From: Macrostomum lignano | Taxonomy: Eukaryota | Length of the DNA stretch: 64,000 nucleotides | Reading direction: 5' to 3' | Assembly: GCA_002269645.1 (NCBI GenBank) | Contig: NIVC01001186.1 | Coordinates: forward strand, 277,990-341,989 | Part shown: in pieces, positions 950-46,204 of the stretch | Numbering within the stretch: the first letter of the stretch is position 1 | Layout of the letters: the number at the start of each line of letters is the position of its first letter | The notes under the pieces: generated by a model | What the model saw: only the letters and a program-made list of their open reading frames with translations | Databases searched by the model: none | Told to the model about the DNA's origin: nothing | Translations under genes and position numbers: made by a program

Positions 950-2050
950 TTCAGTCCCGTCGCCGCCACCAACTGAGAAGCCGACAGGTGAGTCAGGTGA
1001 TAAATATTTAATTAGCGCTTAATCAAACTCATAAACTTGATAATTATGTCATTTCAGTCCCACCGCCGCCACCAACTGAGAAGCCGACAGGTGAGTCAGG
1101 TGATAAATATTTAATTAGCGCTTAATCAAACTCATAAACTTGATAATTATGTCATTTCAGTCCCACCGCCGCCACCAACTGAGAAGCCGACAGGTGAGTC
1201 AGGTGATAAATATTTAATTAGCGCTTAATCAAGCCAATAAACTTGATAATTCTGTCATTTTAGTCCCACCGCCGCCACCAACTGAGAAGCCGACAGGTGA
1301 GTCAGGTGATAAATATTTAATTAGCGCTTAATCAAACTCATAAACTTTATAATTCTGTCATTTCAGTCCCACCGCCGCCACCAACTGAGAAGCCGACAGG
1401 TGAGTCAGGTGATAAATATTTAATTAGCGCTTAATCAAGCCAATAAACTTGATAATTATGTCATTTCAGTCCCACCGCCGCCACCAACTGAGAAGCCGAC
1501 AGGTGAGTCAGGTGATAAATATTTAATTAGCGCTTAATCAAGCCAATAAACTTGATAATTCTGTCATTTTAGTCCCACCGCCGCCACCAACTGAGAAGCC
1601 GACAGGTGAGTCAGGTGATAAATATTTAATTAGCGCTTAATCAAACTCATAAACTTTATAATTCTGTCATTTCAGTCCCACCGCCGCCACCAACTGAGAA
1701 GCCGACAGGTGAGTCAGGTGATAAATATTTAATTAGCGCTTAATCAAGCCAATAAACTTGATAATTATGTCATTTCAGTCCCACCGCCGCCACCAACTGA
1801 GAAGCCGACAGGTGAGTCAGGTGATAAATATTTAATTAGCGCTTAATCAAACTCATAAACTTGATAATTCTGTCATTTCAGTCCCACCGCCGCCACCAAC
1901 TGAGAAGCCGACAGGTGAGTCAGGTGATAAATATTTAATTAGCGCTTAATCAAGCCAATAAACTTGATAATTATGTCATTTCAGTCCCACCGCCGCCACC
2001 AACTGAGAAGCCGACAGGTGAGTCAGGTGATAAATATTTAATTAGCGCTT
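950..2050 (+). repeat. 103-bp tandem array; each unit is a 33-nt exon plus a 70-nt intron (11 exon copies)
   Basis: Exact 103-bp periodicity. Each unit reads TTTCAG or TTTTAG|TCCCACCGCCGCCACCAACTGAGAAGCCGACAG|GTGAGT. Confidence 0.92.
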
Positions 2051-5000
2051 AATAAGTGTGGAGTAACTTGCAAGAACTGCGAGAGTCTGGAGTTTGGAGA
2101 GTGTGGAGCTTGGAGAGTGTGGAGTTTGGAAATTATGGAGTTTTGGAAAGTGTGGAGTTTGGAAAGTGTGAAGTTTTGAAATTGTGGAGTTTGGAAAGTG
2201 TGAAGTTTGGAAAGTGTGGAGTTTGGAGAGTGTGGAGTTTGGAAAGTGTGGAGTTTGGAAAGTGTGGAGTTTGGAAAGTGTGGAGTTTGGAAAGTGTGGA
2301 GTTTGGAGAGTGCGGAGCTTGGAGAGTGTGTAGTTTGGAGAGTGTGGAGTTTGGAAAGTGTGGAGTTTGGAGAGTGCGGAGCTTGGAAGGTGTGAAGTTT
2401 GGAAAGTGTGAAGTTTGAAAAGTGTGAAGTTTGGAAAGTGTGGAGTTTGGAGCGTGCGGAGCTTGGAAAGTGTGGAGTTTGGAAAGTGTGGAGTTTGGAG
2501 AGTGTGGAGTTTGGGGAGTGTAGTTTGGAGACTGTGGAGTTTGGAAAGTGTGGAGTTTGGAGCGTGCGGAGCTTGGAAAGTGTGGAGTTTGGAAAGTGCG
2601 GAGCTTGGAAAGTGTGGAGTTTGGAGAGTGTGGAGTTTTTCAAATTTATTTATTAATTAGCTGGTGTAAAGACATTTTCGGTGACTTACAGTTCCAGAAT
2701 CGATCACTACGACACCTAAAACTTCAAAGCCGAAAGGTGAGCAGCCTTCATCTTGTCAATAAATGCTACTTTATTTAAGAAAACGAAAATAAGGTACATG
2801 CAAGTTCTAAAGCACTTATGTTTTCGTTTCAGTTCGTGAATGTAAGTTGAATTGTGGAATGTTTTGTTTTAATTTTGCTCTACTGATCACAGACTCCACA
2901 ATGAGAGCTGCAGTTACTGATGAAGCTTTGGCTTCAACAACAATAAAAACCGCACAACTGCAGTTGAATTCGTTGGCTGCTACGCAAATGACCACGGCAC
3001 CGAGACGGCCCTGGATGATATACCGCGGAGCCACCCGGAAATGACGGTAGTCGACTGTTACTTCTTTTGCACCCTGAGATTTGCCAACTATTTTGGAATT
3101 TTTGACGCAACCAAATGCTACTGCGGATTTACGATCAACACGACCCAAGTGGTGCAGGACCGCTGCAGGCTCACTTGTCCCGGAAATCCATTGGAAATCT
3201 GCGGCGGCAGCAGTGCAATCAGCATTTACGTTTTGCCGAAACCGAAAGTAGTTAGTCGGCCAGGTGAGTGTCTATGAATCGGGGTAAGTGTCCATAGGGT
3301 GTCCGTTAATCAAGGTACGTGTCTATAGGGTGAGTGTCCATTAATCGGGTTTAGTGTCCATAGGATGAGTGTCCATATTCGGGGTCAATGTCCATAGGAT
3401 GAGTGTTCATAATCGGGGTAAGTGTCCATAGGGTGTCCGTTAATCAAAGTAAGTGTCTATAGGGTGAGTGTCCATTAATCGGGGTAGGTGTCCATAGGAT
3501 GAGTCCATAATCGGGGTAGGTGTTTATTGGATGAGTCCATAATCGGGGTAAATGTCCATAGGATCTGTCCATAATCGGGGTATGTGTCCATAGGATGAGT
3601 GTCCATTAATCGGGGTATGTGTCCATAGGGTGAGTGTCCATTAATCGGGTAGGTGTCCATTGGATGAGTGTCCATTAATCGGGTAGGTGTCCATTGGATG
3701 AGTGTCCATTAATCGGGTTAAGTGTCCATTGGATGAGTGTCCATATTCGGGGTAAATGTCCATAGGATGAGTGTTCATAATCGGGGTAAGTGTCCATAGG
3801 GTGTCCGTTAATCAAAGTATGTGTCTATAGGGTGAGTGTCCATTAATCGGGCTAGGTGTCCATAGGATGAGTCCATAATCGGGGTAGGTGTTTATTGGAT
3901 GAGTCCATAATCGGGGTAAATGTCCATAGGGTGAGTATCCATAATCGGGGTAAGTGTCCATAGGGTGAGTATCCATAATCGGGGTAAGTGTCCATAGGGT
4001 GAGTATCCATAATTGGGGTAAGTGTCCATAGGGTGAGTATCCATAATTGGGGTAAGTGTCCATAGGGTGATTATCCATAATTGGGGTAAGTGTCCATAGG
4101 GTGATTATCCATAATTGGGGTAAGTGTCCATAGGGTGAGTATCCATAATTGGGGTAAGTGTCCATAGGGTGAGTATCCATAATTGGGGTAAGTGTCCATA
4201 GGGTGAGTATCCATAATTGGGGTAAGTGTCCATAGGGTGAGTATCCATAATTGGGGTAAGTGTCCATAGGGTGAGTATCCATAATTGGGGTAAGTGTCCA
4301 TAGGGTGAGTATCCATAATCGGGATAAGTGTCCATAGGGTGAGTATCCATAATTGGGGTAAGTGTCCATAGGGTGAGTATCCATAATTGGGGTAAGTGTC
4401 CATAGGGTGAGTATCCATAATTGGGGTAAGTGTCCATTGGATGAGTGTCCATTAATCGGGTTAAGTGTCCATTGGATGAGTGTCCATATTCGGGGTAAAT
4501 GTCCATAGGATGAGTGTTCATAATCGGGGTAAGTGTCCATAGGGTGTCCGTTAATCAAAGTATGTGTCTATAGGGTGAGTGTCCATTAATCGGGCTAGGT
4601 GTCCATAGGATGAGTCCATAATCGGGGTAGGTGTTTATTGGATGAGTCCATAATCGGGGTAAATGTCCATAGGGTGAGTATCCATAATCGGGGTAAGTGT
4701 CCATAGGGTGAGTATCCATAATCGGGGTAAGTGTCCATAGGGTGAGTATCCATAATTGGGGTAAGTGTCCATAGGGTGAGTATCCATAATTGGGGTAAGT
4801 GTCCATAGGGTGATTATCCATAATTGGGGTAAGTGTCCATAGGGTGATTATCCATAATTGGGGTAAGTGTCCATAGGGTGAGTATCCATAATTGGGGTAA
4901 GTGTCCATAGGGTGAGTATCCATAATTGGGGTAAGTGTCCATAGGGTGAGTATCCATAATTGGGGTAAGTGTCCATAGGGTGAGTATCCATAATTGGGGT

Positions 5001-6191
5001 AAGTGTCCATAGGGTGAGTATCCATAATTGGGGTAAGTGTCCATAGGGTGAGTATCCATAATCGGGATAAGTGTCCATAGGGTGAGTATCCATAATTGGG
5101 GTAAGTGTCCATAGGGTGAGTATCCATAATTGGGGTAAGTGTCCATAGGGTGAGTATCCATAATTGGGGTAAGTGTCCATTGGATGAGTGTCCATTAATC
5201 GGGTTAAGTGTCCATTGGATGAGTGTCCATATTCGGGGTAAATGTCCATAGGATGAGTGTTCATAATCGGGGTAAGTGTCCATAGGGTGTCCGTTAATCA
5301 AAGTATGTGTCTATAGGGTGAGTGTCCATTAATCGGGCTAGGTGTCCATAGGATGAGTCCATAATCGGGGTAGGTGTTTATTGGATGAGTCCATAATCGG
5401 GGTAAATGTCCATAGGGTGAGTATCCATAATCGGGGTAAGTGTCCATAGGGTGAGTATCCATAATCGGGGTAAGTGTCCATAGGGTGAGTATCCATAATT
5501 GGGGTAAGTGTCCATAGGGTGAGTATCCATAATTGGGGTAAGTGTCCATAGGGTGAGTATCCATAATTGGGGTAAGTGTCCATAGGGTGAGTATCCATAA
5601 TTGGGGTAAGTGTCCATAGGGTGAGTATCCATAATTGGGGTAAGTGTCCATAGGGTGAGTATCCATAATCGGGGTAAATGTTCATAGGGTGAGTGTCCAT
5701 AATCGGGATAGGTGTCCATAGGGTGAGTATCCATAATTGGGGTAAGTGTCCATTAATCGGTCCGTCATTCTATGAACACCTTCTCAAGTACATAGAAATA
5801 CATACAAATTGTACAACCCTGAAGCCTAAGATGAATTGTTATTATGGATAAACAGTAAAAAGATTTTTAATTATTGCAACTTTCAGAAGATCCTGTTGGC
5901 TGCTATTTTGCCAGTGATTCATCAACGCTGGGAGGACCCAAACTGTCCAGCTCGGACATGACTCAGTCAGTTTGCGCCAGTGAGTGTGCCAAGTACCTGA
6001 CCAAATATTTCGGCTTGATGACAAAGGACTCACAAGGGAGCTGCCATTGCGGCAACGAAATTCCATCTGGGGAGCAAAACCAATACGACATGAGCTTCTG
6101 CCAGTACAAGTGCCCCGGGGTGAGATTCCACATGGAAGTGTGCGGGAGCGACATGTTTATGCTGGTGTTCAAACTGAATATACAGTCCTGA
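955..6191 (+). CDS. 3' part of a multi-exon gene: Pro/Thr-rich stalk followed by two WSC carbohydrate-binding domains (5' exons not identified)
   Basis: Phase-1 exons: 11 x 33 nt at 955,1058,1161,1264,1367,1470,1573,1676,1779,1882,1985 (VPPPPPTEKPT; first copy VPSPPPTEKPT); 2692-2736 (VPESITTTPKTSKPK); 2964-3263 (EFVGCYAND...CYFFC...YFGI...CYCG...CRLTCPGNPLEICGG); 5887-6191 (DPVGCYF...CASEC...YFGL...CHCG...CQYKCPG...EVCGS, stop). All have AG/GT boundaries and join in frame. The Cys pattern matches the WSC domain. Confidence 0.85.
2055..2640. repeat. Intronic minisatellite, 16-bp unit (GTGTGGAGTTTGGAAA)
   Basis: Tandem repetition; explains the overlapping low-complexity ORFs. Confidence 0.95.
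3264..5755. repeat. Intronic minisatellite, 34-bp unit (CCATAGGGTGAGTATCCATAATTGGGGTAAGTGT; two 17-bp halves) with a 743-bp higher-order duplication
   Basis: Tandem repetition starting at the exon donor. ORF-track entries 3812..4558 and 4555..5301 are identical, giving a 743-bp offset. Confidence 0.95.
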
Positions 6192-6673
6192 AACTCAGTT
6201 CAGGCCGGAGTGAACTAGTGCGAGTTTAAACAGAAACTCGAATCTCGAATAAATAAAAGAAGTAAATCGCAAAAAGTTGAAATTCTTTGTTTATTTCTTT
6301 TTATTGCATTTTAATTTTCATTATATCCCTCGTTCTGCTGATCCCAAATGACATCAACTCTCTTGAATGCTGCAAAATGACTTCGGTAAATGACTGGTGT
6401 ATATCACACTCCTCTAAGCCACACCTGAATGCACATCCATGACTTTTAGCCCAGCAATTGGGAGGGAACAAAAAGCAATGAAGGCGGAAGCCTAGTTTGA
6501 AATATTCTGTTGCTTTAAAAGTTATTTGCTTCTCCAAGTTTCTGCAAGTTAAACGGGGGTGGGAAGCCGGGAGCTACCCGCGGATCAGCCCTGGGAGGGG
6601 CTCTGCCGCTGAGGGGCACTAACAGCGGCATATAGCCCGAGATTGGACCCTGACGTCTGGGCCAGGGGAATCT

Positions 6674-8125
6674 GCCAACCCAAGCCTATGGACTAAGACA
6701 CCGCCAACCCAAACCTATGGACTAAGACACCGCCAACCCAAACCTATGGACTAAGACACCGCCAACCCAAGCCTATGGACTAAGACACCGCCAACCCAAA
6801 CCTATGGACTAAGACACCGCCAACCCAAGCCTATGACTAAGACACCGCCAACTCAAACCTATGAACTAAGACACCGCCAACCCAAACCTATGACTAAGAC
6901 ACCGCCAACCCAAACCTATGGACTAAGACACCGCCAACCCAAGCCTATGACTAAGACACCGCCAACTCAAACCTATGAACTAAGACACCGCCAACCCAAA
7001 CCTATGAACTAAGACACCGCCAACCCAAGCCTATGAACTAAGACACCGCCCGCCAACCCAAGCCTATGAACTAAGACACCGCCAACCCTGTAGAAAAATA
7101 ACTGAAGAAATAACACTGGCCAGTGAATACGTTGACAATAACAACTTGAAAACCAAAGTTAGGATGAAAAGGCTCCTCCAGCAGTATATTTATTTGCGTG
7201 GTTGAGAGAGGGGGGTAGAGAATAGATAAGAAGAAAATGGGTAAGAAGGGCGAGGGCTAAAATGCTCTAACGAGACCGAGGGGGGGGGGGCTGACTGAAA
7301 ACTCACCGATCGATAATCGGAAAACAAGATAAGAATGTACAGTACGTAGAGCGCGGTAGATAGAAGATGGACTAGGCACACAGGGAATGGAAGAAAATGA
7401 AAAGGGAGCAAGTGAATTCTATTAGCGCAAGCTGAAATTTCGCGACAAACCCAAACCTATGGACTAAGACACCGCCAACCCAAGCCTATGACTAAGACAC
7501 CGCCAACTCAAACCTATGAACTAAGACACCGCCAACCCAAACCTATGACTAAGACACCGCCAACCCAAACCTATGGACTAAGACACCGCCAACCCAAGCC
7601 TATGGACTAAGACACCGCCAACCCAAGCCTATGGACTAAGACACCGCCAACCCAAGCCTATGACTAAGACACCGCCAACTCAAACCTATGAACTAAGACA
7701 CCGCCAACTCAAACCTATGAACTAAGACACCGCCAACCCAAACCTATGAACTAAGACACCGCCAACCCAAGCCTATGAACTAAGACACCGCCCGCCAACC
7801 CAAGCCTATGAACTAAGACACCGCCAACCCAAACCTATGGACTAAGACACCGCCAACCCAAGCCTATGGACTAAGACACCGCCAACCCAAACCTATGGAC
7901 TAAGACACCGCCAACCCAAGCCTATGGACTAAGACACCGCCAACCCAAGCCTATGGACTAAGACACCGCCAACCCAAGCCTATGGACTAAGACACCGCCA
8001 ACCCAAGCCTATGGACTAAGACACCGCCAACCCAAGCCTATGGACTAAGACACCGCCAACCCAAGCCTATGGACTACGACACCGCCAACCCAAGCCACCG
8101 CCAACTAAGACACCGCCAACCCAAA
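6674..8125. repeat. Minisatellite, 29-bp unit (GCCAACCCAAGCCTATGGACTAAGACACC), interrupted by a solo LTR
   Basis: Tandem repetition with period 29. Confidence 0.95.
7089..7447 (-). mobile_element. Solo LTR (359 bp)
   Basis: TGT...ACA termini, 5-bp target-site duplication AACCC (7084-7088 and 7448-7452), AATAAA on the minus strand. Confidence 0.75.
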
Positions 8126-8662: not shown

Positions 8663-11600
8663 TCAGCGCCGTTTAATAGCAACGTAAATATTCCAAAGAA
8701 GAGACAGGCCGCACATGAACAGCACTCGGTACTGAAATTATTAATACAAATTATTTATAATATATATTCATAAAGACTCATGCATACACAATGTTCAAAA
8801 ACAAAGACTCACCTTTTGCGGTACATAGTTGATATTAATAAACTGGAACAGGGACCAGATCTTCACGTTCATTTTCAGCACGTCTAAGAAGCTGTCCTTG
8901 ACTTTGGCGTGCGCGAACGCCAAGGATCGGCCCTGCGAGATTAAAGATTTTGTCCGAATTAAATACTCTATTATCACTTTTCTACTTAGCATTAGTAGCC
9001 ATTCGTGTCCCAATCTACATCTACTCAATTCCTATCTACCCAATCCCTATCTACCCAATCCCTATCTACCCAATCCCTATCTACCCAATTCCTATCTACC
9101 CAATTCCTATCTACCCAATCCCTATTTACCCAATCCCTATCTACCCAATCCCTATCTACCCAATCCCTATCTACCCAATCCCTATCTACCCAATCCCTAT
9201 CTACCCAATCTCCATCTACCTAATCCCTATCTACCCAATCCCTATCTACCCAATCCCTATCTACCCTATCCCTATCTACCTAATCCCTATTTACCCAATC
9301 CCTATCTACCCAATCCCTATCTACCCAATCCCTATCTACCCAATCCCTATCTACCCAATCCCTATCTGCCTAATCCCTATCTACCCAATTCCTATCTACC
9401 CAATTCCTATCTACCCAATCCTTATCTACCCAATCCCTATCTACCTAATCCCTATCTACCCAATCCCTATCTACACAATCCCTATCTACCTAATCCCTAT
9501 CTACGAGTACCTAATCCCTTATCTACCTAATATCCATCTACCCAATCCCTATCTACCCAATCCCTATCTACCCTATCCCTATCTACCTAATCCCTATCTA
9601 CCCAATTCCTATCTACCCAATCCCTATCTACACAATCCCTATCTACCTAATCCCTATCTACCCAATCCCTATCTACCCAATCCCTATCTACCCAATCCCT
9701 ATCTACCCAATCCCTATCTACCCAATCACTATCTACCCAATCCCTATCTACCCAATCCCTATCTACCCAATCCCTATCTACCCAATCTCCATCTACCTAA
9801 TCCCTATCTACCCAATCCCTATCTACCGAATCCCTATCTACCCTATCCCTATCTACCCAATCCCTATCTACCCAATCCCTATCTACCCGATCCCTATCTA
9901 CCCAATCCCTATCTACCCAATCCCTATCTACCTAATCCCTATCTACCCAATTCCTATCTACCCAATCCCTATCTACCCAATCCCTATCTACCCAATCCTT
10001 ATCTACCCTATCCCTATCTACCCAATCCCTATCTACCCAATCCCTATCTACCCAATCCCTATGTACCCAATCTCCATCTACCTAATCCCTATCTACCCAA
10101 TCCATATCTACCCAATCCCTATCTACCCAATCCCTATCTACCCAATCCCTATCTACCCAATCCCTATCTACCCAATCCCTATCTACCCAATCCCTATCTA
10201 CCCAATCCCTATCTACCCTATCCCTATCTACCTAATCCCTATCTACCCAATCCCTATCTACCCAATCCCTTTCTACCCAATCCCTATCTACACAATCCCT
10301 ATCTACCTAATCCTTATCTACCTAATCCCTTATCTACCTAATATCTATCTATCCAATCCTATCTACCCAATCCCTATGTACCCAATCTCCATCTACCTAA
10401 TCCCTATCTACCCAATCCATATCTACCCAATCCCTATCTACCCTATCCCTATCTACCTAATCCCTATCTACCCAATCCTTATCTACCCAATCCTTATATA
10501 CCCAATCCCTATCTACCCTATCCCTATCCATCTAATCCCTATCTACCCAATCCCTTATCTACCCAATCTCCATCTACCCAATCTCCATCTACTCTATCCC
10601 TTATCTACCCAATCTCCATCTACTCTATCCCTTATCTACCCAATCTCCATCTACTCTATCCCTTATCTACCCCATCTCCATCTACCAAATTTCCATCTAC
10701 CCATTCTCTATCTAGTCTATCCTTATCTACCAATCTCCATCTACCCAATCCCTACGTACCCAATCTCCATCTACCCTATCTATCTACCATATCCAACTAA
10801 TCTTCATCTACCTCTCAGTCTCACCTCGAACAGCGGCACTGAATAGTAGAGCAACAGCAGGTAAGGCGGTGCCAACAGCAGCCTGTCAATCAGAGTGCGT
10901 TTCAACGCTACAAACTGTTGGTCAGAGTCCTTGGGCAGAGCCCTGTCCAACTGGCGATAGAAAGCGTGAATCAACGGGCCAGAAATAAAGAAGCCAAAGG
11001 CTGAATAAGCGAAGGTGCTTCTCAGGCTAAACTGGCCGCCAGTGCCGGGTTTGGGCGCGATCAGCTGTGACAGAATGTCGCCTAGGCCGAAAATTGTGCC
11101 GCTAAGATGACGGATGGTTGTTGAGGGGTGAAGCTTGAATATTAATCATTGGATTTGTGACCCGCAACCATTCGGCTCACTGCTAGCTTATATTATCTCA
11201 CACTCTTTGGTTCAAAGGTGTCACCTGACCCCTCTCGATTCATATCCTTCACAGAAGGGGTCACCTGACCCCTCCCGTTTCATATACTTCACTGACAGGG
11301 GTCACCTGACCCTCCCGATTCATATTCTTCACTGACAGGGGTCACCTGACCCCTCCCGATTCATATACTTCAGACAGGGGTCATATGACCCTCCCAAATC
11401 ATATACTTTAGACAGGGGTCATATGACCCTCCCAAATCATATACTTCACTGACAGGGGTCATATGACCCTCCCGATTCATATACTTCACTGACAGGGGTC
11501 ATTGACCCTCCCGATTCATATACTTCACTGACAGGGGTCACCTGACCCCTCCCGATTCATATACTTCACTGACAGGGGTCTCCTGACCCCTCCCGATTCA

Positions 11601-14647: not shown

Positions 14648-17600
14648 TCACTCGTCACCAGCCAGAAGATCGGCGATGGCATTCAGAATTTGAGCATCGA
14701 AAGCCGTTTGAGAGTCGTTGGCAGCCTCGGCCGACCAGATTTTCAGACAGCGGCCGGGCCTGTGGATCAGATCGGCCAACAGCAGGTCGAGACGGTGGCG
14801 GAGAACCTGAAATGATGTCGGGGGGTGGAATGTGAAGCTTTGATGAGGGGTGGGGGGATAAAACTTTTGTATTTTGCATGCATTATCGAGAACGAGAATA
14901 GATTTTTAAATCAGCGATGGGATCGAATTATTGTTTTAATGTCCTGATATCTTAATCTAAGTGTCCCTGGTGTCCGTGTGTTCCCAGGGTTTTGGTGTCA
15001 TAGTGTCTTAATATTCTAGTATTTTAGTGTCCTCGTGTCTTTATGTCCTAGTGTCTCGATGTCTTAGTGTCCCATTGTCCTAGTGTCTTCATGTTTTAGA
15101 GTCTCAATGGCCTACAGTTACAATGTCTTGGTGTCTCGATGTCCTAGTGTCTCAAAGTCCTAATGTCTAAATTTCTTGGTGTTTTAATGTCCTAGTATTT
15201 TAGTGTCTCCGGAGTCTCAATGTCCTAGTGTCTCGATGTCTTAGTGTCTTTATGTCCTAGTGTCCTTATGTCATGGTGTCTTAATGGCCTAGTATTTTAA
15301 TGCTCTAGTGTCAACGGCTTACTGTCACAATGTCTTGGTGTCACAATGTCCTAGTGTCTCAATGTCCTAGTGTCTCAATGTCCTGGTGTCTCAATGTCCT
15401 AGTGTCTCAATGTCCTGGTGTCTCAATGTCCTAGTGTCTCAATGTCCTAGTGTCTCAATGTCCTGGTGTCTCAATGTCCTGGTGTCTCAATGTCCTAGTG
15501 TCTCAATGTCCTGGTGTCTCAATGTCCTGGTGTCTCAATGTCCTAGTGTCTCAATGTCCTAGTGTCTTAATGTCCTAGTGTCTCAATGTCCTGGTGTCTC
15601 AATGTCCTAGTGTCTCAATGTCCTGGTGTCTCAATGTCCTGGTGTCTCAATGTCCTAGTGTCTCAATGTCCTGGTGTCTCAATGTCCTGGTGTCTCAATG
15701 TCCTGGTGTCACAATGTCCTGGTGTCTCAATGACCTGGTGTCTCAATGTCCTAGTGTCTCAATGTCCTGGTGTCTCAATGTCCTGGTGTCTCAATGTCCT
15801 GGTGTCTCAATGTCCTGGTGTCTCAATGCATAAATGCATAAATTATAGTATTCTAGTGTCCGAGTGTCTCAGTGGTCTCAATGACTGTCTGTCTGCCCGC
15901 CAGCCCGCAGCACGCACCAGCACTGTGGAGAAGGCGGCGGGTGTGGCAGCCAGCCGGATCCAGTCGTCCAGCACGGCCAGTTGAACGCCGCATTCGTGCG
16001 AGTGCCGAGCCTGGGCGCAGCAGAACAGCAGGTGGATCGGCCGGGTCAGGGAGGCGTCAAACAGCGACACTGTGCGCCTGTCGTTCAGCAGGCATTTCTC
16101 AAAGTAGGCCAGCCAGGCCGGCTCTTCAAATCCGCAGGCGACGCTGCCTTGCGGCAGTTCGTAAGACGGCTCGCCGGGTCTGCCGACGGCTTTCTTCGAT
16201 TTGAGGGATTTGCAGCGAACTATATTGGGATAGAGACCGGCGGTGACCACGGCGCGGATCAGTTCTAATCGGTGACTGTTGCGATTCAACAGCGGATGAT
16301 CAGATGTCAACTGAATAGAGGGAGTTGATCGGCTTCGGCGAAGTGTGAGTGGCTTTGCAGATTGGTCAGACCGATTTACAGATTGGTCAAACCGATTTAC
16401 AGATTGGTCTGAACGATTTACAGATTGGTCTGAACGATTTACAGATTGGTCTGAACGATTTACAGATTGGTCAAACCGATTTACAGATTGATCAAAACGA
16501 TTTACAGATTCGTCAGACCGATTTACAGATTGGTCAGACACGGAAGACTCTGATTGAGCTTCTTCGTCGTAGAACTGATCGCTCATGGACATGTACTGGG
16601 CTAGTTGGTCGGTCAGTTGCGCCTTCAATTCCTCGATCGTCTGCAGTACAGTTGGGGACAAATAATTTCGCCTAGCAAAATCGTAGGCGGCATTCAGCCC
16701 TCTGTTGCGCTTGGTCCGATACCAAGCTTTGTAGGCCAACCAGAGCAACAGGTGGTCGGACTCGCAGCCTTCGGCTAATTGCAATTTGCACTGTTTCACT
16801 TCTTGCTCGGCGCCTAGCGGTGTCTCGAATGGCGTGCGATGAGACAGAGAAGCGGCGATGGTCAGCACCGGGTCCAAGCAGGAGAAACAGACCGCCAGCA
16901 GCACCATCTTGGCTAGCTGGCAGGGTAAAGGTAGGCGAGCAATGTGCCTTCCCATTGGCGTGAGCTCCTCGTCGGGTGTCAGGGCGCCGAGCTCCTGGAG
17001 CAGGTGTTGAGCCTGACGTACGTGCTCCTGAGGCGGCGGGTCCGGCATCTGCGCCAGGAACTCGGCGGCGGGTAGGTCCGGGTGGAGCAGCTTTACCTGG
17101 GCGACGGGGATTTGAAGGCTACAAGGTTAAGACTAAGGTTAAGTACGTTTGAAGACTATCACGGACATCCCAGGTAGTCACAGACACCCCAGACTAATCA
17201 CAAACACCTTAAGCTAATCGCAGACACCCCAGGCTAATCACAGATATCCAGGCTAATCAGAGATATCCAGGCTAATCACAGACATCCAGAATAAGCACAG
17301 ACAACCCAGACTTATCACAGACACCCCAGACTAATCACAGACACCCCAGACTAATCACAGACACCCCAGACTAAGCACAGACAACCCAGACTAATCACAG
17401 ACACCCCAGACTAATAACAGACAACCCAGACTAATCACAGACACACCAGACTAATCACAGACACCCCAGACTAATCACAGACACCCCAGACTAAACACAG
17501 ACACCCCAGACTAAACACAGACACCCCAGACTAATCACAGACACCCCAGACTAAGCACAGACACCCCAGACTAATCACAGACACCCCAGACTAATCACAG

Positions 17601-20600
17601 ACACCCCAGGCTAATCACAGACACCCCAGACTAATCACAGACACCCCAGACTAAGCACAGACACCCCAGACTAATCACAGACACCCCAGACTAAACACAG
17701 ACACCCCAGACTAATCACAGACACCCCAGACTAAGCACAGACACCCCAGACTAAGCACAGACACCCCAGACTAAGCACAGACACCCCAGACTAATCACAG
17801 ACACCCCAGACTAAGCACAGACATCCCAGACTAAGCACAGACACCCCAGACTAATGACAGACACCCCAGACTAATCACAGACACCCCAGACTAATCACAG
17901 ACAACCCAGACTAATCACAGACACCCCAGACTAATCACAGACACCCCAGACTAATCACAGACACCCCAGACTAATCACAGACACCCCAGACTAATGACAG
18001 ACACCCCAGACTAAGCACAGACACCCCAGACTAATGACAGACACGCCAGACTAATCACAGACACCCCAGACTAAGCACAGACACCCCAGACTAATGACAG
18101 ACACCCCAGACTAAGCACAGACACCCCAGACTAATCACAGACACCCCAGACTAATCACAGACACCCCAGACTAAGCACAGACACCCCAGACTAAGCACAG
18201 ACACCCCAGACTAATCACAGACAACCCAGACTAATCACAGACAACCCAGACTAATCACAGACACTCCAGACTAATCACAGACAACCCAGACTAATCACAG
18301 ACACCCCAGACTAATCACAGACACCCCAGACTAATCACAGACACTCCAGGCTAAACACAGACACCCCAGACTAAATACAGACACCCCAGACTAAGCACAG
18401 ACACCCCAGACTAATCACAGACACCCCAGACTAATCACAGACACCCCAGACTAATCACAGACAACCCAGACTAATCACAGACACTCCAGGCTAATCACAG
18501 ACACCCCAGACTAATCACAGACACCCCAGACTAATCACAGACACCCCAGACTAATCACAGACACCCCAGACTAATCACAGACACCCCAGACTAATCACAG
18601 ACACCCCAGACTAAGCACAGACACCCCAGACTAATCACAGACACCCCAGACTAAGCACAGACACCCCAGACTAAGCACAGACACCCCAGACTAAGCACAG
18701 ACACCCCAGACTAATCACAGACACCCCAGACTAATCACAGACAACCCAGACTAATCACAGACACCCCAGACTAATCACAGACACCCCAGACTAATCACAG
18801 ACACCCCAGACTAATCACAGACACCCCAGACTAAGCACAGACACCCCAGACTAATCACAGACACCCCAGACTAAGCACAGACACCCCAGACTAAGCACAG
18901 ACACCCCAGGCTAATCACAGACACCCCAGACTAATCACAGACACCCCAGACTAATCACAGACACTCCAGGCTAATCACAGACACTCCAGGCTAATCACAG
19001 ACACCCCAGACTAATCACAGACACCCCAGACTAAACACAGACACCCCAGACTAATCACAGACACCCCAGACTAATCACAGACACCCCAGACTAAGCACAG
19101 ACACCCCAGACTAATGACAGACACCCCAGACTAAGCACAGACACCCCAGACTAATCACAGACACCCCAGGCTAATCACAGACACTCCAGGCTAATCGCAG
19201 ACACCCCAGGCTAATCACAGACACTCCAGACTAATCACAGACACCCCAGACTAAGCACAGACACCCCAGACTAATCACAGACACCCCAGACTAAGCACAG
19301 ACACCCCAGACTAATGACAGACACCCCAGACTAATCACAGACACCCCAGACTAATCACAGACACCCCAGACTAATCACAGACACTCCAGGCTAATCACAG
19401 ACACTCCAGGCTAATCACAGACACCCCAGACTAATCACAGACACCCCAGACTAAACACAGACACCCCAGACTAATCACAGACACCCCAGACTAATCACAG
19501 ACACCCCAGACTAAGCACAGACACCCCAGACTAATGACAGACACCCCAGACTAAGCACAGACACCCCAGACTAATCACAGACACCCCAGGCTAATCACAG
19601 ACACCCAGACTAATCGCACAGACACCCCAGACTAAGCACAGACACCCCAGACTAAGCACAGACACCCCAGACTAAGCACAGACACCCCAGACTAATCACA
19701 GACACCCCAGACTAAGCACAGACACCCAGACTAAGCACAGACACCCCAGACTAATGACAGACACCCCAGACTAATCACAGACACCCCAGACTAATCACAG
19801 ACAACCCAGACTAATCACAGACACCCCAGACTAATCACAGACACCCCAGACTAATCACAGACACCCCAGACTAATCACAGACACCCCAGACTAATGACAG
19901 ACACCCCAGACTAAGCACAGACACCCCAGACTAATGACAGACACCCAGACTAATCACAGACACCCCAGACTAAGCACAGACACCCCAGACTAATGACAGA
20001 CACCCCAGACTAATCACAGACACCCCAGACTAATCACAGACACCCCAGACTAATCACAGACACCCCAGACTAAGCACAGACACCCCAGACTAATCACAGA
20101 CACCCCAGACTAATCACAGACAACCCAGACTAATCACAGACAACCCAGACTAATCACAGACACCCAGACTAATCACAGACACCCAGACTAATCACAGACA
20201 CCCCAGACTAATCACAGACACCCCAGACTAATCACAGACACCCAGACTAAACACAGACACCCCAGACTAAACAGACACCCCAGACTAATCACAGACACCC
20301 CAGACTAATCACAGACACCCCAGACTAATCACAGACACCCCAGACTAATCACAGACAACCCAGACTAATCACAGACACCCAGACTAATCACAGACACCCC
20401 AGACTAATCACAGACACCCCAGACTAATCACAGACACCCCAGACTAATCACAGACACCCCAGACTAATCACAGACACCCCAGACTAATCACAGACACCCC
20501 AGACTAAGCACAGACACCCCAGACTAATCACAGACACCCCAGACTAAGCACAGACACCCCAGACTAAGCACAGACACCCCAGACTAATCACAGACACCCC

Positions 20601-23600
20601 AGACTAATCACAGACACCCCAGACTAATCACAGACACCCAGACTAATCACAGACACCCCAGACTAATCACAGACACCCCAGACTAATCACAGACACCCCA
20701 GACTAATCACAGACACCCCAGACTAAGCACAGACACCCCAGACTAATCACAGACACCCCAGACTAAGCACAGACACCCCAGACTAATCACAGACACCCCA
20801 GGCTAATCACAGACACCCCAGACTAATCACAGACACCCCAGACTAATCACAGACACTCCAGGCTAATCACAGACACCCAGACTAATCACAGACACCCCAG
20901 ACTAATCACAGACACCCCAGACTAAACACAGACACCCCAGACTAATCACAGACACCCCAGACTAATCACAGACACCCCAGACTAAGCACAGACACCCCAG
21001 ACTAATGACAGACACCCCAGACTAAGCACAGACACCCCAGGCTAATCACAGACACTCCAGGCTAATCGCAGACACCCCAGGCTAATCACAGACACTCCAG
21101 GCTAATCACAGACACCCCAGACTAAACTCAGACACCCTGTCTAATAACAAACATTTTAAAATGATTTACCTGCAACAGGAAATCCTCCAGACTCAATCTG
21201 AGCACTTCCGGCGGTAACCTATGCGGCATTCTGGATTCGGCAAATTTCGAATACAATCGATAGCAGACGCCAGGCTGCACTCGACCAGCTCGACCTTCGC
21301 GTTGTCGAGCATTGTCCAGACTGATGGGACTGGCTGACAGGCTGTCGGACATGGCCAAATGATGATAGCCGGACAGCTTAGCAAAGCCGGTGTCAATCAC
21401 GTACACAACGTCGTCAATGGTGAGGGAAGTCTCAGCAATATTAGTAGCCAATACTACCTTTCTTTTGCCGGCTGGTGCAGGTAGGAATACCTGGCGCTGA
21501 TCCCGGCTGGGCAGACGAGAGTGCAGAGGCAGTACGTGACAACCATTGGTGCAGGCGGAGTCGGAGTTCTGCCCGATTTTAATTGTTGGTTCATAAATAA
21601 TATCATTTGGTTTTTTTATTGCGTCCTGACTAATTTTTATAGCTAAAAACTAGAATTTCTACTACAAGTAGCGCAGTTAATACGTGCCTAGTATTAAAAA
21701 TATTTTCCTACTTAATTTTTTTAATTTGAGCTTAGGAGCAGTTGACTTAATCCAGAGTGGCAGAGCGCTGCACTCAAAACAACTGCTGCCTTTAGTCTAT
21801 GGCCCAAATGCTTAACTAGTGAGTAGTAATTGAAAATTACGTACATATACTCCAATTTTCAATTGCAAAACAAGTAGTAAGGTACCTGTCAGAAATTATG
21901 TACCACATTTTCCCATTACGAATCAAATAGTAAGGTACCGAACCAGCTGGAACAGGGTATTCTACAGGAATTCCCAATACACAGTAGGGAGGGGGGGACA
22001 CGCTTGCTATCTGGGGGCCCGGGGTGCTTACTATCTGGGGGTGCTTGCTATCTGGGGTATGCTTGCTATCTGCGGGATGCTTGCTATCTGGGGGATGCTT
22101 GCTATCTGGGGGATGCTTGCTATCTGGGAGATGCTTGCTGTCTGGGGGATGCTTGCTGTCTGGGGGATGCTTGCTGTCTGGGGGATGCTTGCTATCTGGG
22201 GGTGCTTGCCATTTGGGGGGATGCTTGCGGTCGTGAAGATGCTTTCTATTTAGGGGGAATGCCTGCTATCTTTGTGAAGGCTTTTTATGTTGTGGTTTTG
22301 TTACATTTAGAAAAAAAAGAGATTCATAGAAAGCATCTTGGTCCGTGACAATTTTACTGGAATAAGGTGATTATAAAGCTGAAGAAGGAATTGGTTGCTA
22401 AAATGTTCTGTTTTAATGGATTTGCATGACTAATTTTTGCTCCTTGCTCCTCCCAAGTGTCCCGAAGGGGGGCACTAGATTGCTAGTCCATATACTAAAA
22501 TCGGATACTACAAATGATAGAAAAAATCACAGAATATTTGATTACCAGCAGCGTAATTAAATCCTTAATCTGCTTCATTCCGGGCACAAAGACTAGCACA
22601 GCCCCAGCCGGCTGTGTCCTATGCACGTAACTAATCATGTGAGCCACCAGTTCCACGGGCGGCTCCTCGCAGCCCATAGCAACCAGCAGATCCGCATGGC
22701 TGGATGACAATTGAAACTTCTTCACAGCCTCATTGGCAGCCAATCGGAGCTCGCGTTCCCGCTCAGCCAATCGGGATCGAGCTTCGCGCGGAGCGATCCG
22801 ATCAGACCTCAGCCGATTCTGCATTGCCTGCCGATTCTTATTGGCCAGGCTGGTCAAACTGGAGCCCGATTTTGAGAAGAATTCAAAATTTGACTCGCTA
22901 AGGCACTGTTCCAGAGAGCGAACTTTAACCGGGTACAGGCGGCCTTCAACTGACGCGCTTTCGCTTGACGGCCCGAAGTAGCGGCAGAACTGTTCGGCGT
23001 CTAGCGTGGCAGACATGAGCACGAGTTTGAGATCTGGTCGGCTAGGCAAGATTGTTCTCTTTAATTCAGCGAGCAGTAAGTCCGTTTCCGCGCTGCGCTC
23101 GTGTACCTGACAAGTTTGACGAGTCAACAGGTGTACAGGGGTACATGCACTGGAATAATGGGCCGGATGTGCTCAGGCGCAACTATGTCAGAGTCAAATC
23201 TCATTTCAGTCTTGAGTCCGACGCTCTAACCAACTAGATAATATACTCGTACAATATGAAAGAATTTCACGTCACCTCGTCAACAATCAGATGGCTGACG
23301 CTGGCCAGTGACGGGTCGCTTTCCAGCCATCGCAGCAGAATGCCAACGGTGCAGTACACGATTGAGCCCGCCAGGCGCTGCGGCATCTTGCGCTCCAGAC
23401 GAACCTTTGACGGAAGAATTGGTGAGATTGGAGACATGATTAAAGTGGCGATATAAATGGCCACAGCTGAGGATCTGGGAGGCTGGCCCAGCAGCTGAGG
23501 ATCTGGGAGGCTGGCCCAGCATCTGAGGATCAGGGAGGCTGGCCCAGCAACTGACACTCTGGGAGGCTGGCCCAGCAACTGAGGATCTGGGAGGCTGGCC

Positions 23601-42560: not shown

Positions 42561-45448
42561 CATTGCGCTTCTATTATGTTTAGCAGTTTTGTTGTGTTTT
42601 TAAGGTGTTTTAATAAAAAAATCTTTTTGCACTACTAAGATTCGAACCCAGGTTGCTACATTAGCATTCCAGTCTGTTCGCATCTCGGCTATCTCTTTTC
42701 AATTGGAGAACGTGAATTGTGGCCCTTATAATTCAATTCTTACAGCAAGTTAATTGAAGTAAAAAGTAATGACATAATCAATTTCTCAGTCAGCCAGTAT
42801 CAGTCTCAATTTAAGTTAGCAATATTGGTTACGCAATTTAAATCAAGTCGTGTGTGCATTTCTTCGGCACTGTTTTCAACTTGTTGTGATGCAATCTTTA
42901 TCACAATCGGAATTCAGCCAGTCGGTTTTTTCTCTAGCATTCTTACAATGAATTTTAGGTCGAAAGAGCTGCTTGACCTTTGCAAAAAAGCAGGTTTTTC
43001 GAATATTTAATCCCTTTAAAATTGAGCAATTTTTTAGCCAAGATGCATGTACCGTCCCAGGAAAATTTCTAATCAAATGGTGCAAGTTTGAAGAAAATCG
43101 GTTGAGCCATTTTTTCTGAAATCTATCGCATACCTACCCACATACAGACAACTCATTTTTAGTATATAGGACAAAATGGTGATTTATTTGCAAAAAATAA
43201 AAACTCTAATCGTTAAAACAGTCTCATTCATAAATTATTCTCCCATAAGCGTAGCTGTTAAGCATGCATTTTTTGCCTCTGGAGTCTGGACTCTTTCTAA
43301 CAAAGGTGCGCGCACAATTTGGTGATGCCACATTGTCAAATACAGTTTTAAATAAACATTGTTTAAAGTTTTTACCCTTGCACCTTTAATATATAGTCTA
43401 AAGATTAAGTCAAAGTTAAAAATGCTACTTTAGATCTAAGTTAGGCCCCCCTATCCACCATTTTTAATTATTTTTTCTTTTCCTGGGGTCTCTAGGGAAT
43501 GACAGTAAATTTCTTGGGTTATAGCTATAGATAGGAATAATTTTCTTAAATTCTTACACAATAATTAGGCCTAGCAAGTGTTATTTAAATTGATTGTTAT
43601 GTTAACGCCTTTAAAAAAAGAAACAAAATTTTAACATTACACCAATATTATACCATGTTACTCAATCAATCATTACAGTACGGGCCTAGGCATAATCTAA
43701 ATTGATTGATTGACGTGCAAACCAAATAAAACGCTATGTTGTTGTCACTTCATAATTGTTTGGCTTAGCAACTTTGGCTTAGCAGATTTGCCTAAAAATT
43801 ACACGAAGCTCTTATTTTTGCAAACATAACAACCAAAAAACAATAAACTACAAAAATGATCTCGTCCGACAATAACGAAGGCGTTAGTATTTTCCACACA
43901 AAAAAGCAAGCACAGAGTCACAGACCAGCGACCAGAACGTACGTAACACGTAACACGTAACACGTAACAAAAGAAAAAAAGGATTTCTTAGAAAATAAAT
44001 CGAGGTCATTTTCCTTGTAGGCTAGCTACTGAAATTTTTATTGAAAAATAAATGCAACTGTATAAAGCAAAATATTACTTTCTAAATCTTTATTTGAAAA
44101 ATATAGTGTTCAGTTAAGCTATGTTGCTCAACTTGTTTTAACGTTTAAAGCATAGAGTAATCTTTAAAATATCCGGAGTGATCTGACTTTTTTACTGCCG
44201 AAGTTTGCAAATTGCTGTACGAAAATCTGATAGTGAGGATAAATTTAGCTCGTATCGCTACTGCTAGCTACTTAAGCTGAAATTCGTGTTGTGAAAACAG
44301 CTTAGCTACATACTGCCTAAGCTTATGCGCTACAACATAATCTTATATTGTCAAATATTATCCACCCCAATCCTGCCCCTTCATTTTGAGCCAAATAGCT
44401 CCCGTTATGCCGAAAACCCGACCACTTTAGCATTTGGAGATTTCTATGGGGAGAAATCGGATAAATTTGGATTTCATGTGAACTTAAGGCTCTAGTAGGA
44501 GCTTCAAATGCTTAAATGACGAGATGACCAGGATGACCAGATTACTATGCCATCCATGAGCGTCATCACGCGATCAACGACTGACTCATCTGGCGATCAG
44601 ATCTATCAGTCCCAGGACGACCACACCACAGCCTCTGCTGAAGCGGCCCCTAAAGGGCGGTCCCTGCCGACCCAAGCTGCATGCATGCCCACAACCGCCG
44701 GCAACGTCAGCCGCCCCGACTATGGCCTCCTCCCGTCTCATCCCCGATCACTGTTTTGTCACCTGCTGCACCTTTCATCGACGTCAACGCCCTCCTCACC
44801 TCCATGACTGCGATGATGCAGCAGAACAGATCCATAAAAAATCCCCCCACGAATTCAGACATTGATCGACCTGTAGGATAATTAAAATTATTAAAACCGT
44901 CTAGCTGTCACAACTTTGGTGGCAGCAGTGGAATATTCTAAAAAGAAAAAAATTAGAGCCCTAACTTATGTACACGTACAATCCCAACTATTTTTTAATT
45001 GTATAGCTATGGAAATGTGCTTGGCATCTGTGGTAACCTATCACTTTCAAATTGAAATTCAAAATTTGAACTTTGCAACTTGAAAATACCAAAATGCATG
45101 CGATATTTTACGAGTATGCTCGTAGAGATAAAAAATGACTGAACACATTAGCGATCAGATTTTAGCCAGACTATTTTGGTTGGTTAGAGCTTCAATCGTC
45201 AAATAGCAAGAGTCATGTCAACTTCTACCTGCTCTACTGCCTGCATCTACACTAAATATGGAACCGATTGACTGAAATACAATCGCAATAGCCCATCGAA
45301 GGAATTCTTAGAAACTGAATCGTTTTCTTCGGCTTCAGTACGTTACTTTGACTATTAGGATAATTTACAGCATAAAATTTGCAGACTACCAGTCTACAGT
45401 CTTGGCAGTGAAAATCTTAAGGAATAAATTTTGATAAATAATCATCAA

Positions 45449-46204
45449 ATGCCAACAAAGACGCTTAGCCAACTGTTTTCCGTTTTTCTCTTCATGCTAA
45501 AAGTCGTGCAGGCAGCTGACGTGGCTTCGTATTCAAGCATCAACGGCAGCCTCTGCATCAACAAAGAGTTCGTTCGTAGCCTCTCCGACGTTGTTTCAAT
45601 GGCCGGCTGCGCCTTCTGGTGCAGCAGCGACCGGCGCTGTCAGGCGTTCAGCCTGGCTGACGGTCCGTGCCAGCTGTTCGTGTTCGACAAGTGCAGCAAG
45701 TCGGTGAGGAACTGCGGCTGCTCCAGGAGAGGCCAGGTGTTTGTGAAGCAGCAGCCGGGACTCGAGGCTGGGGCGCTGTGTCCGTCTGGCTACGGAGACG
45801 ACCTGTGCGGAGTGAAGTACAAGCTGCATAGTGAGACGGGCAACTGGAAAAAGAGCAAAGAGAAGTGCGAGTCGGAGAGCGGCCTGGTGATCATGGCCGA
45901 TGTGGTTGACGCCACCGAGATGGACAACGTGGAAAATATTTACAAGTCGCGCAGTTCTGGTCAATCGGTTTTTCTCGGAGGCCACCAGAAAGTAGGAAGT
46001 TCAGAGCCGTCAGGAGGCTGGCACTGGGTCGCCTGCAACATCCCTTTGAGCAGCAGCTTGTGGGGTCATGATGAGCCAAACAATCTGGGAGGTGGTAACG
46101 AGAATGCTGTTGCACGGTATCACAGTATCCCAAAGCTGGTCGATATGAACGAGGCCTCTGATCTGTCCAAAGTTCTGTGCGAGTGCGCGTCGCCATTCAA
46201 CTGA
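45449..46204 (+). CDS. Secreted PAN/apple-like + C-type lectin domain protein (paralog A), intronless, ~251 aa
   Basis: Signal peptide MPTKTLSQLFSVFLFMLKVVQA, a PAN-type C..WC....RCQAF....C pattern, and a CTL domain (W..SKEKC, FLGG, WHW, EPNN, LCE). Confidence 0.85.
   Translation: MPTKTLSQLFSVFLFMLKVVQAADVASYSSINGSLCINKEFVRSLSDVVSMAGCAFWCSSDRRCQAFSLADGPCQLFVFDKCSKSVRNCGCSRRGQVFVKQQPGLEAGALCPSGYGDDLCGVKYKLHSETGNWKKSKEKCESESGLVIMADVVDATEMDNVENIYKSRSSGQSVFLGGHQKVGSSEPSGGWHWVACNIPLSSSLWGHDEPNNLGGGNENAVARYHSIPKLVDMNEASDLSKVLCECASPFN

Follow-up and report, generated by a model that had tools for sequence, protein, structure and literature searches.

A tandem array of 33-nt exons in a WSC-domain gene of the flatworm Macrostomum lignano

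Can a stretch of DNA that looks like a minisatellite be, at the same time, a series of working exons? The question is raised by a segment of 64,000 nucleotides of the Macrostomum lignano assembly GCA_002269645.1 (contig NIVC01001186.1), hereafter the window, whose positions 949-2053 form a tandem array with a period of 103, 10.7 copies, 96% matches, zero indels and a score of 2028 in Tandem Repeats Finder. The array lies within the annotated gene BOX15_Mlig001594g1 and is a real, coding part of this gene and of its copies g5 and g18, which encode proteins with WSC domains. Taken as a whole, the findings are best explained, with a probability of about 0.75, by a working coding array that gives a linker whose length is determined mainly by genomic copy number, in a WSC protein that is secreted by the prostate gland.

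Anatomy of the array and of its gene

Exact parsing divides positions 955-2017 into 11 units of 103 bp, each made of a 33-nt exon, preceded by (c/t)ag and followed by gtgagt, and of an intron that totals 70 nt. In all 11 exons, ttcag or tttag stands directly 5' and gtgagt directly 3'. The original prediction, drawn from the letters of the DNA, had described the 103-bp repeat as a full splicing unit composed of a 33-nt exon and a 70-nt intron, and the exact parsing agrees with it, coordinates included. The features of the gene that fall in the window are the following, with array exons 2 to 10 given as obtained by exact parsing.

1-954, +: 3' part of intron 6, which contains a 20-bp minisatellite at 9-760
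955-987, +: array exon 1, 33 nt, phase 1-1, encoding (V)PSPPPTEKPT, found in the g5 (P0001), g18 (P0002) and g1 (P0152) proteins
1058-1090, +: array exon 2, 33 nt, encoding VPPPPPTEKPT
1161-1193, +: array exon 3, which opens the first copy of a 309-bp block (1161-1469)
1264-1296, +: array exon 4, acceptor ttttag
1367-1399, +: array exon 5
1470-1502, +: array exon 6, which opens the second copy of the 309-bp block (1470-1778)
1573-1605, +: array exon 7, acceptor ttttag
1676-1708, +: array exon 8
1779-1811, +: array exon 9
1882-1914, +: array exon 10
1985-2017, +: array exon 11, the last unit, whose intron is repeat-like for its first 36 nt only (to 2053)
2018-2691, +: intron 3' of the array, with a 16-bp minisatellite at 2084-2638
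2692-2736, +: 45-nt exon, phase 1-1, encoding VPESITTTPKTSKPK, present in all three annotated proteins
2833-2841, +: 9-nt micro-exon TTCGTGAAT, phase 1-1, which adds VRE and turns the next junction codon into F
2964-3263, +: 300-nt exon, phase 1-1, encoding WSC domain 1 (PF01822) with 8 Cys
3264-5886, +: intron filled by a 34-bp minisatellite (3263-5753, ~74 copies)
5887-6191, +: terminal coding exon with WSC domain 2 and the stop codon TGA at 6189-6191
6248-6257, +: two overlapping AATAAA polyadenylation signals, read from the sequence, 57 nt 3' of the stop codon

The units are highly homogeneous, with an identity of 96-100% from one to another, introns included. Array exons 2-11 are mutually identical at the window's locus, and the 6 sites that vary among units 2-11 are all intronic (6/6). 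Array exon 1 departs from units 2-11 by 2 nt (CCG TCG for CCA CCG), which changes a Pro into a Ser, and this divergence is the same at all three loci of the gene. The array also shows a higher-order organization, since the block 1161-1469 is repeated at 1470-1778 with 0 mismatches and the exact match at a shift of 309 extends over 408 nt. Both the identity of exons 2-11 and the duplication of three units (309 bp) had been predicted and were recovered.

Only one reading frame of the array exon fits its surroundings. Read as (G)TC CCA CCG ... ACA G, the exon encodes VPPPPPTEKPT and is of phase 1 at both ends. The frame that gives SHRRHQLRSRQ is open, yet out of phase with every flanking exon, and the third frame is ruled out by a stop codon. 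The exons had been predicted to be of phase 1-1, with a length that is a multiple of 3, in precisely the VPPPPPTEKPT frame, and three GenBank proteins carry it. The frame continues into 2692-2736, 2833-2841 and both WSC exons (2964-3263 and, as the last one, 5887-6191). Thus, the array does join the WSC exons in frame, as had been proposed, but with the 45-nt and 9-nt exons in between.

The splicing signals of the unit are of good quality. The donor, CAG/GTGAGT, is near consensus, the acceptor is pyrimidine-rich and the 70-nt intron contains four yUnAy branch-point candidates located 18-47 nt 5' of the acceptor. Other short introns of the same gene measure about 105 and 122 nt, which supports the plausibility of splicing at this scale.

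Over the 16,191 nt compared, no difference separates the window from the g1 locus (L003), window base 1 standing at offset 13234 of L003, and the deposited g1 protein PAA71100.1 (P0152) has exactly the WSC sequence of the window. A protein search performed with the conceptually spliced product led to the M. lignano proteins of BOX15_Mlig001594g5 and g18, and a cluster look-up led to that of g1. The g5 locus (L001) contains 7 units and the g18 locus (L002) 8 units, for 11 at the window's own locus.

Mapping of the proteins onto the loci gives a layout of 58 (exon 1), 33, 45, 36, 30, 27, 33 repeated N times, 45, 9, 300 and 305 nt, in which every internal exon, array units included, is of phase 1-1. 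Exons 1-6 are located upstream of the window; exon 6 (L003 12765-12791), the sequence of which ends in ..GATGAGGACACCGGTCCAG, stops 443 nt before window base 1. Exon 1 encodes a putative signal peptide, MAVQKLTVFLILAAITL(C/G)FAQ, as judged by eye, and exons 2-6 are five symmetrical micro-exons that encode an acidic region of ~55 residues. The 9-nt exon is also found at L001 15356-15364 and L002 16261-16269; its splice-site context is identical, and intact, at all three loci. Micro-exons represent 588 of the 1251 coding nucleotides (47%) when all 11 units are counted and ~31% in a two-unit model.

The C-terminal part of the protein matches in two stretches the WSC family, whose domains are of a carbohydrate-binding type (Pfam PF01822, E 3.2e-26, score 91.8 bits, curated cut-off 27.8), and the relatives detected by phmmer include PDB 7pz2 and the WSC domain of Kremen1. 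WSC domain 1, as translated from 2964-3263, has its 8 Cys together with GCY, CYCG and CGG motifs. The chain ends with ...MFMLVFKLNIQS* straight after WSC domain 2 and has no hydrophobic segment and no membrane anchor. For this reason the term stalk, which had been applied to the repeat, is a loose one, and the repeat is better seen as a linker between the acidic N-terminal region and the two WSC domains. Neither is the array invisible to annotation, as had been supposed, since the gene is annotated, albeit with too few units.

Use of the units in transcripts

In each of the three deposited proteins, VPSPPPTEKPT comes first and VPPPPPTEKPT units come after it, read in the frame that had been predicted and joined to the 45-nt and WSC exons. 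According to the methods of the genome paper (PMC5730564), the annotation relied on STAR-mapped RNA-seq reads, StringTie/TACO, BLAT-mapped de novo transcripts and TransDecoder open reading frames (ORFs), and the methods quoted there include no ab initio step. The exon junctions of this annotation thus rest on transcript data, from RNA-seq as well as from mapped transcripts. The g5 protein is particularly informative because it contains a VPPLPPTEKPT unit, the CTG codon of which is unique to unit 6 of the 7 units at L001; this Leu unit is found only as an internal unit, so that at least one internal unit is spliced in. Moreover, the reverse primer of Mlig-pro32 (pro32R) agrees perfectly with exon 6 spliced to the exon that follows it, and agrees with the genome apart from one mismatch. 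The RNA-seq-based models, with 2-5 units, therefore provide good, though indirect, evidence that the repeated exons occur in mature transcripts.

The opposite view would be that the internal units are silent pseudo-exons in an intronic minisatellite and that the messenger RNA (mRNA) holds the first and the last unit only. The models of g1 and g18 indeed hold just two units, the exon sequence is not significantly more constrained than the intron, and intronic minisatellites abound in this genome (PMC5730564). Nevertheless, five units are present in the g5 protein, including the Leu variant of the internal L001 unit 6, and 26 of the 26 units at the three loci have an intact acceptor, an intact donor and an open frame. 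The only broken copy, a remnant after unit 1 of L002, lost its acceptor by deletion. In addition, two de novo transcripts of the same component, RNA815_11100.1 (1358 nt) and RNA815_11100.2 (1183 nt), both exceed the ~1100 nt expected for a two-unit mRNA. Silent internal units are, on this evidence, highly improbable.

How many units a transcript contains is a different matter. The models use 2 of 11 units (g1), 5 of 7 (g5) and 2 of 8 (g18), that is to say fewer than the genome holds at all three loci. Such counts could be explained if combinatorial exon skipping were the main source of variation, identical splice sites and symmetrical exons allowing any donor to be joined with any downstream acceptor, in which case each locus would produce a ladder of 1-N units and typical mRNAs would have few units, like the deposited models. 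This corresponds to the length-tunable spacer of the original prediction, and it can coexist with a linker length that is set by genomic copy number. The 9-nt exon, which is used in the g1 and g5 models and missing from the g18 model though intact at the three loci, can be put on the same side; its absence reflects either alternative use or an aligner missing an exon of 9 nt. In the same way, the difference in length between the two de novo transcripts, 175 nt, nearly equals the 174 nt that five units and the 9-nt exon make together, and their lengths give a weak hint of about 10 and about 4 units, the ends of their untranslated regions (UTRs) not being fixed. Finally, the mechanism would be exactly that of the schistosome micro-exon genes (MEGs) (PMC4350168).

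On the contrary, the low counts may simply stem from the repeat itself. The units are identical and, in the annotation, reads mapping to up to 1000 places were kept (STAR outFilterMultimapNmax 1000), so that unit-to-unit junctions are unplaceable and the counts are not readable as exon skipping. Junction reads of identical units land on every donor-acceptor pair, which makes the path taken by StringTie/TACO arbitrary. L001, the sole locus with a distinguishable internal unit (Leu), gives the longest model (5 of 7), as if mappability limited the count, and repeats of 33 nt collapse in de novo short-read assemblies. Besides, with introns as short as 70 nt, intron definition favours the pairing of neighbouring splice sites. 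Skipping as the main source of variation is therefore regarded as possible but rather unlikely.

The preferred explanation, a working coding array with a length determined by the genome, can be described as follows. A micro-exon and its short intron would have been amplified in the manner of a minisatellite, by unequal exchange or replication slippage, in a genome that contains ~15% of simple and tandem repeats (PMC5730564). Because the exon is of 33 nt and of phase 1-1, each gain or loss of a unit keeps the frame. Each unit, endowed with a donor, branch-point candidates and an acceptor, could be spliced in and add the 11 residues VPPPPPTEKPT, and all units would be included in the mRNA. The length of the linker would be set mainly by genomic copy number (11, 7 or 8 units), to which the skipping of units may add variation at the transcript level. 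The result would be a stiff proline-rich spacer, possibly O-glycosylated, that parts the acidic N-terminal region from the two WSC domains.

Copy number, expression and likely role

The three loci of one and the same assembly carry 11, 7 and 8 units, which correspond to 121, 77 and 88 residues if all of them are included. The loci are syntenic: they share flanking minisatellites and neighbours, with about 97.6% identity in unique DNA, and the neighbours common to the three are two hnRNP-like genes upstream and Mpv17/PMP22 and DEAH helicase genes downstream. The DV1 line carries extra large chromosomes, from which a redundancy of such gene copies is expected (PMC5730564). The arrays differ in the number of units, in the order of the intron variants, by one Leu codon and by a 2-bp intron deletion; the donor of the last unit is gtaagt in L001 and L002. 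In L002 (14179-14301), the intron after the first unit holds a 53-bp remnant of a decayed unit, which kept its donor and lost its acceptor through a fusion of mid-intron to mid-exon (..aatcaag/CCACCAACT..ACAG/gtgagt), while the rest of the array is intact. Together with the exact 309-bp duplication, these differences show that whole units have been gained and lost repeatedly, in the way expected of unequal exchange or slippage. The suggestion that the array varies by unequal crossing-over is thereby strengthened, with 11, 7 and 8 units in different orders, an exact duplication and one decayed unit.

It could be objected that the assembly, faced with a genome rich in repeats and partly polyploid, produced the copy-number differences as artefacts and that the loci are one allele series with one array length. 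The assembly Mlig_3_7 was indeed hard to obtain, with only ~64% of its bases judged free of errors by REAPR (PMC5730564). However, the arrays also differ in the order of intron variants, the Leu codon, the 2-bp deletion and the 53-bp remnant, and the flanking unique DNA and the WSC exons differ too. Moreover, the arrays measure merely 0.7-1.1 kb, a length well inside single PacBio reads, and the assembly was made with Canu on PacBio data and polished with Pilon. An artefact of this kind is, in our view, extremely improbable.

Sequence conservation, for its part, offers no independent support for selection on the exons. It had been stated that all differences between copies lie in the intron, which is correct for units 2-11 of the window, but the contrast between exon and intron is not statistically significant. 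Among the 26 units of the three loci, variation affects 3 of 33 sites in the exon against 8 of 70 in the intron (Fisher p = 1.0); without the diverged first unit the figures are 1/33 and 8/70 (Fisher p = 0.27), and within the window 0/33 and 6/70 (Fisher p = 0.17). Invariant exons were consequently dropped as a proof of constraint, and exon uniformity is accounted for just as well by recent amplification and homogenisation. When window 2692-6191 is set against L001 and L002, each pair of copies is seen to differ in the 45-nt and WSC exons by 3-4 non-synonymous changes, including D/H, F/Y, I/V, Q/K and H/N, and by only 0-2 synonymous ones. This excess of non-synonymous changes is suggestive of relaxed or diversifying selection, with counts that are far too few for a test.

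As for expression, the gene belongs to those assigned to the prostate. Brand et al. 2020 (PMC7336406, supplementary file 16) assigned the prostate-limited transcripts Mlig-pro32 (RNA815_11100.2) and Mlig-pro51 (RNA815_26553) to Mlig001594.g5; both are in situ transcripts of Weber et al. 2018, with a signal limited to the prostate gland (via PMC7336406). Three of the primers, pro51F, pro51R and pro32R, were located on L001 and L002, where pro51F lies in the 5' UTR, pro51R in intron 6 and pro32R across the exon 6 junction. Several other M. lignano prostate candidates also have WSC domains. The transcripts RNA815_80.4 (Arbore et al. 2015), Mlig-pro46 and Mlig-pro63, considered as well, were set aside: their sequences differ and none of their primers occurs in the window, in L001 or in L002, so that they represent other genes of the same broad class.

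The pro51 product also informs on splicing. Its 614 bp equal 69 nt of 5' UTR, exons 1-6 (229 nt) and 316 nt of read-through into intron 6, a length that fits the removal of introns 1-5 and the retention of intron 6; as RNA at least, there is therefore a short form ending in ..DEDTGPGELIYICAAMCLL*. This form (retained intron 6, L001 12760-13075) would stop after 13 extra codons and be devoid of the linker and of both WSC domains. AATAAA motifs are observed in L001 near 12995, 13019 and 13209, and the corresponding region of intron 6 at the window's locus is situated a short way upstream of window base 1. The intron-6-retaining form may be a true short isoform or an unspliced precursor.

Since the transcripts of the gene cluster are prostate-limited, the protein is most likely a secreted component of the seminal fluid. 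In this protein, the proline-rich linker of 77-121 residues would hold the two WSC domains off the acidic N-terminal part. It may adopt the rigid polyproline II conformation, which extends by ~0.31 nm per residue, and its Thr residues are candidates for O-glycosylation.

Several observations weigh against a working coding array in a prostate-secreted protein, beginning with the low unit counts of the models and the exon-intron contrast over the three loci reported above. The prostate assignment itself rests on a blastn search to g5 made by others, and the forward primer pro32F has no match on L001 or L002 within 4 mismatches, from which it follows that the pro32 clone comes from a further allele or paralogue. 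Two word-indexed protein searches returned M. lignano copies only, and an exhaustive phmmer search of 1.84 billion representatives returned these copies along with generic multi-WSC proteins of ~30% identity, the best stretches of which almost all begin past residue 110, i.e. match through the WSC domains. No orthologue outside M. lignano was thus found in either type of search, nor did the searches find transcript-derived proteins with more units. Finally, a single-sequence AlphaFold2 model of the g5 protein was uninformative, with a mean predicted local distance difference test (pLDDT) score of 37.9.

The surroundings of the gene are themselves rich in repeats. In positions 1-30000 of the window, nearly every intron or intergenic stretch is filled with a minisatellite peculiar to it, the periods ranging over 15-41 bp and the copies numbering up to 200; examples are found at 9-760, 2084-2638, 3263-5753, 6674-8125, 9019-10788 and 17153-21137. 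One of 20 bp repeated 200 times stands between ORF fragments that match the DEAH helicase domain. Such an environment is likely to be the background of the amplification of the exon-intron unit.

Other duplications are observed at a distance from the array. Upstream of the WSC gene, L003 4964-6010 and 8057-9070 are tandem duplicate genes whose products, with two ribonucleoprotein (RNP)-type motifs (RGFGFVTY, RGFGFVTF) and a tail rich in Gly and Tyr, resemble hnRNP A/B on inspection by eye, and this hnRNP-like pair directly precedes the WSC gene at all three loci. Further downstream on the + strand of the window, two closely alike Cys-rich ORFs of ~260 codons (45428-46201 and 53055-53837) have ..RRCQAFSLADGPCQLFVFDKCSKSVRNCGCSRRG.. 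in common. Neither has a Pfam match at E <= 0.001, and the pair resembles a tandem gene duplication in an unknown family.

Significance and comparison with known systems

The reference model of this seminal-fluid candidate is probably shortened in its linker. The M. lignano annotation reports 2 of the 11 units at the window's locus, and the true linker may exceed the deposited one by up to 99 residues; RNA interference, proteomics and evolutionary-rate studies of this candidate would thus rest on a wrong or incomplete sequence. The array is, moreover, a compact coding series of exons and introns of a size accessible to the polymerase chain reaction (~1.1 kb), and it differs among three gene copies in one inbred line. 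It therefore lends itself well, as a marker and as a test case, to the study of rapid length evolution in a candidate seminal-fluid protein. The name Mlig001594 is absent from the main texts of the literature searched, and the same search found no paper that relates genes of Macrostomum to the micro-exon type.

The parallel with schistosome micro-exon genes, which had been drawn from the symmetry of the array exons, fits better than was first seen, as all internal exons are small and of phase 1-1. In both cases, a signal-peptide exon is followed by tiny symmetrical exons (here 33, 45, 36, 30, 27, 33 repeated N times, 45 and 9 nt), and the product is secreted, expressed in glands, lineage-restricted and encoded by fast-diverging copies (PMC4350168). 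The schistosome VAL-6 gene likewise combines a MEG-like part with a part made of conventional domains (PMC4350168). On the contrary, micro-exons do not form most of the coding region as they do in MEGs: their share is 47% at best, and the two WSC exons (300 + 305 nt) dominate. Furthermore, the micro-exons of a MEG are usually all distinct, whereas here one of them has been amplified into a homogeneous array, and the host is a free-living macrostomorph. Given this share of at most 47% and skipping that is unproven, the gene is not filed as a MEG.

In earlier discussion, the parasitic Neodermata were put forward as the group that gained MEG organisation, although an older origin was allowed for (Laumer et al. 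2015, PMC4398949). That the micro-exons of a free-living macrostomorph are all symmetrical is relevant to whether this organisation predates parasitism, a question that Laumer et al. asked in so many words (PMC4398949). One may go further and speculate that the organisation, a signal-peptide exon with freely combinable phase-1 micro-exons behind it, is not an invention of parasites at all and that, in the early-branching Macrostomum, one micro-exon was amplified and a stochastic pairing of identical splice sites produces a ladder of linker lengths from each locus in a seminal-fluid protein. We consider this bolder scenario unlikely, but if it were true, the variant-generating system of host-parasite interfaces would also be at work in sexual conflict.

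Other systems share part of the design. The kringle IV type 2 repeats of human LPA and the spider silk gene Flag are coding tandem repeats of exons together with introns, in which copy number sets the length and the introns are homogenised. Their units, however, are of kilobase size and code either for folded domains, as in LPA, or for long silk motifs, in contrast with the 11-residue linker module and the 103-bp unit found here. In the PEVK region of titin, many small symmetrical exons encode proline-rich spacers, and their differential inclusion tunes an extensible segment. PEVK exons are nonetheless diverged and separated by ordinary introns, and titin is intracellular, unlike the product of this near-identical array of minisatellite scale. 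Yeast sensors of the Wsc1 type are composed of a WSC domain, a Ser/Thr-rich stalk and a membrane anchor. The likeness lies in a WSC domain joined to a rigid, probably glycosylated segment of low complexity; the M. lignano protein differs by having no transmembrane segment and a repeat that is N-terminal to the WSC domains instead of being placed between WSC domain and membrane.

The closest precedent is SmPoMuc of Schistosoma mansoni, in which exon 2, of 27 bp, is carried by a genomic repeat of ~1 kb present in 1-20 tandem copies (Roger et al. 2008, PMC2576457). These repeats are homogenised by concerted evolution, vary between loci and defeat assembly (PMC2576457). Both genes encode a flatworm secreted protein with N-terminal repeats that derive from a micro-exon repeated together with its intron (27 bp there, 33 nt here), with a high identity of the units and a number that varies among loci (1-20 there, 7, 8 and 11 here). 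In both, the unit is short and contains Pro and Thr (9 and 11 residues, respectively), and the repeat troubles assembly and annotation. The differences concern the unit, which is of ~1 kb with intervening GA microsatellites in SmPoMuc and of 103 bp with a 70-nt intron here, and the C-terminal domains, which appear unrelated, protein searches with the present gene, none of them a direct comparison with SmPoMuc sequences, having given nothing beyond WSC-domain matches. SmPoMuc transcripts that exceed the repeat number of the gene, by trans-splicing or exon repetition, are a feature of that system. In addition, SmPoMuc is a larval antigen of the interaction with the host, whereas the gene described here is a prostate-gland gene of a free-living species.

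It would consequently be overstated to present the structure as a novel kind, as SmPoMuc precedes it (PMC2576457). The likeness to SmPoMuc is best read as one of mechanism and not as membership of a gene family. As the principle is already established in SmPoMuc, MEGs and LPA, the understanding of such genes is left unchanged. What sets the M. lignano array apart from the SmPoMuc precedent is a unit of one tenth the size, in an unrelated gene and in a free-living species.

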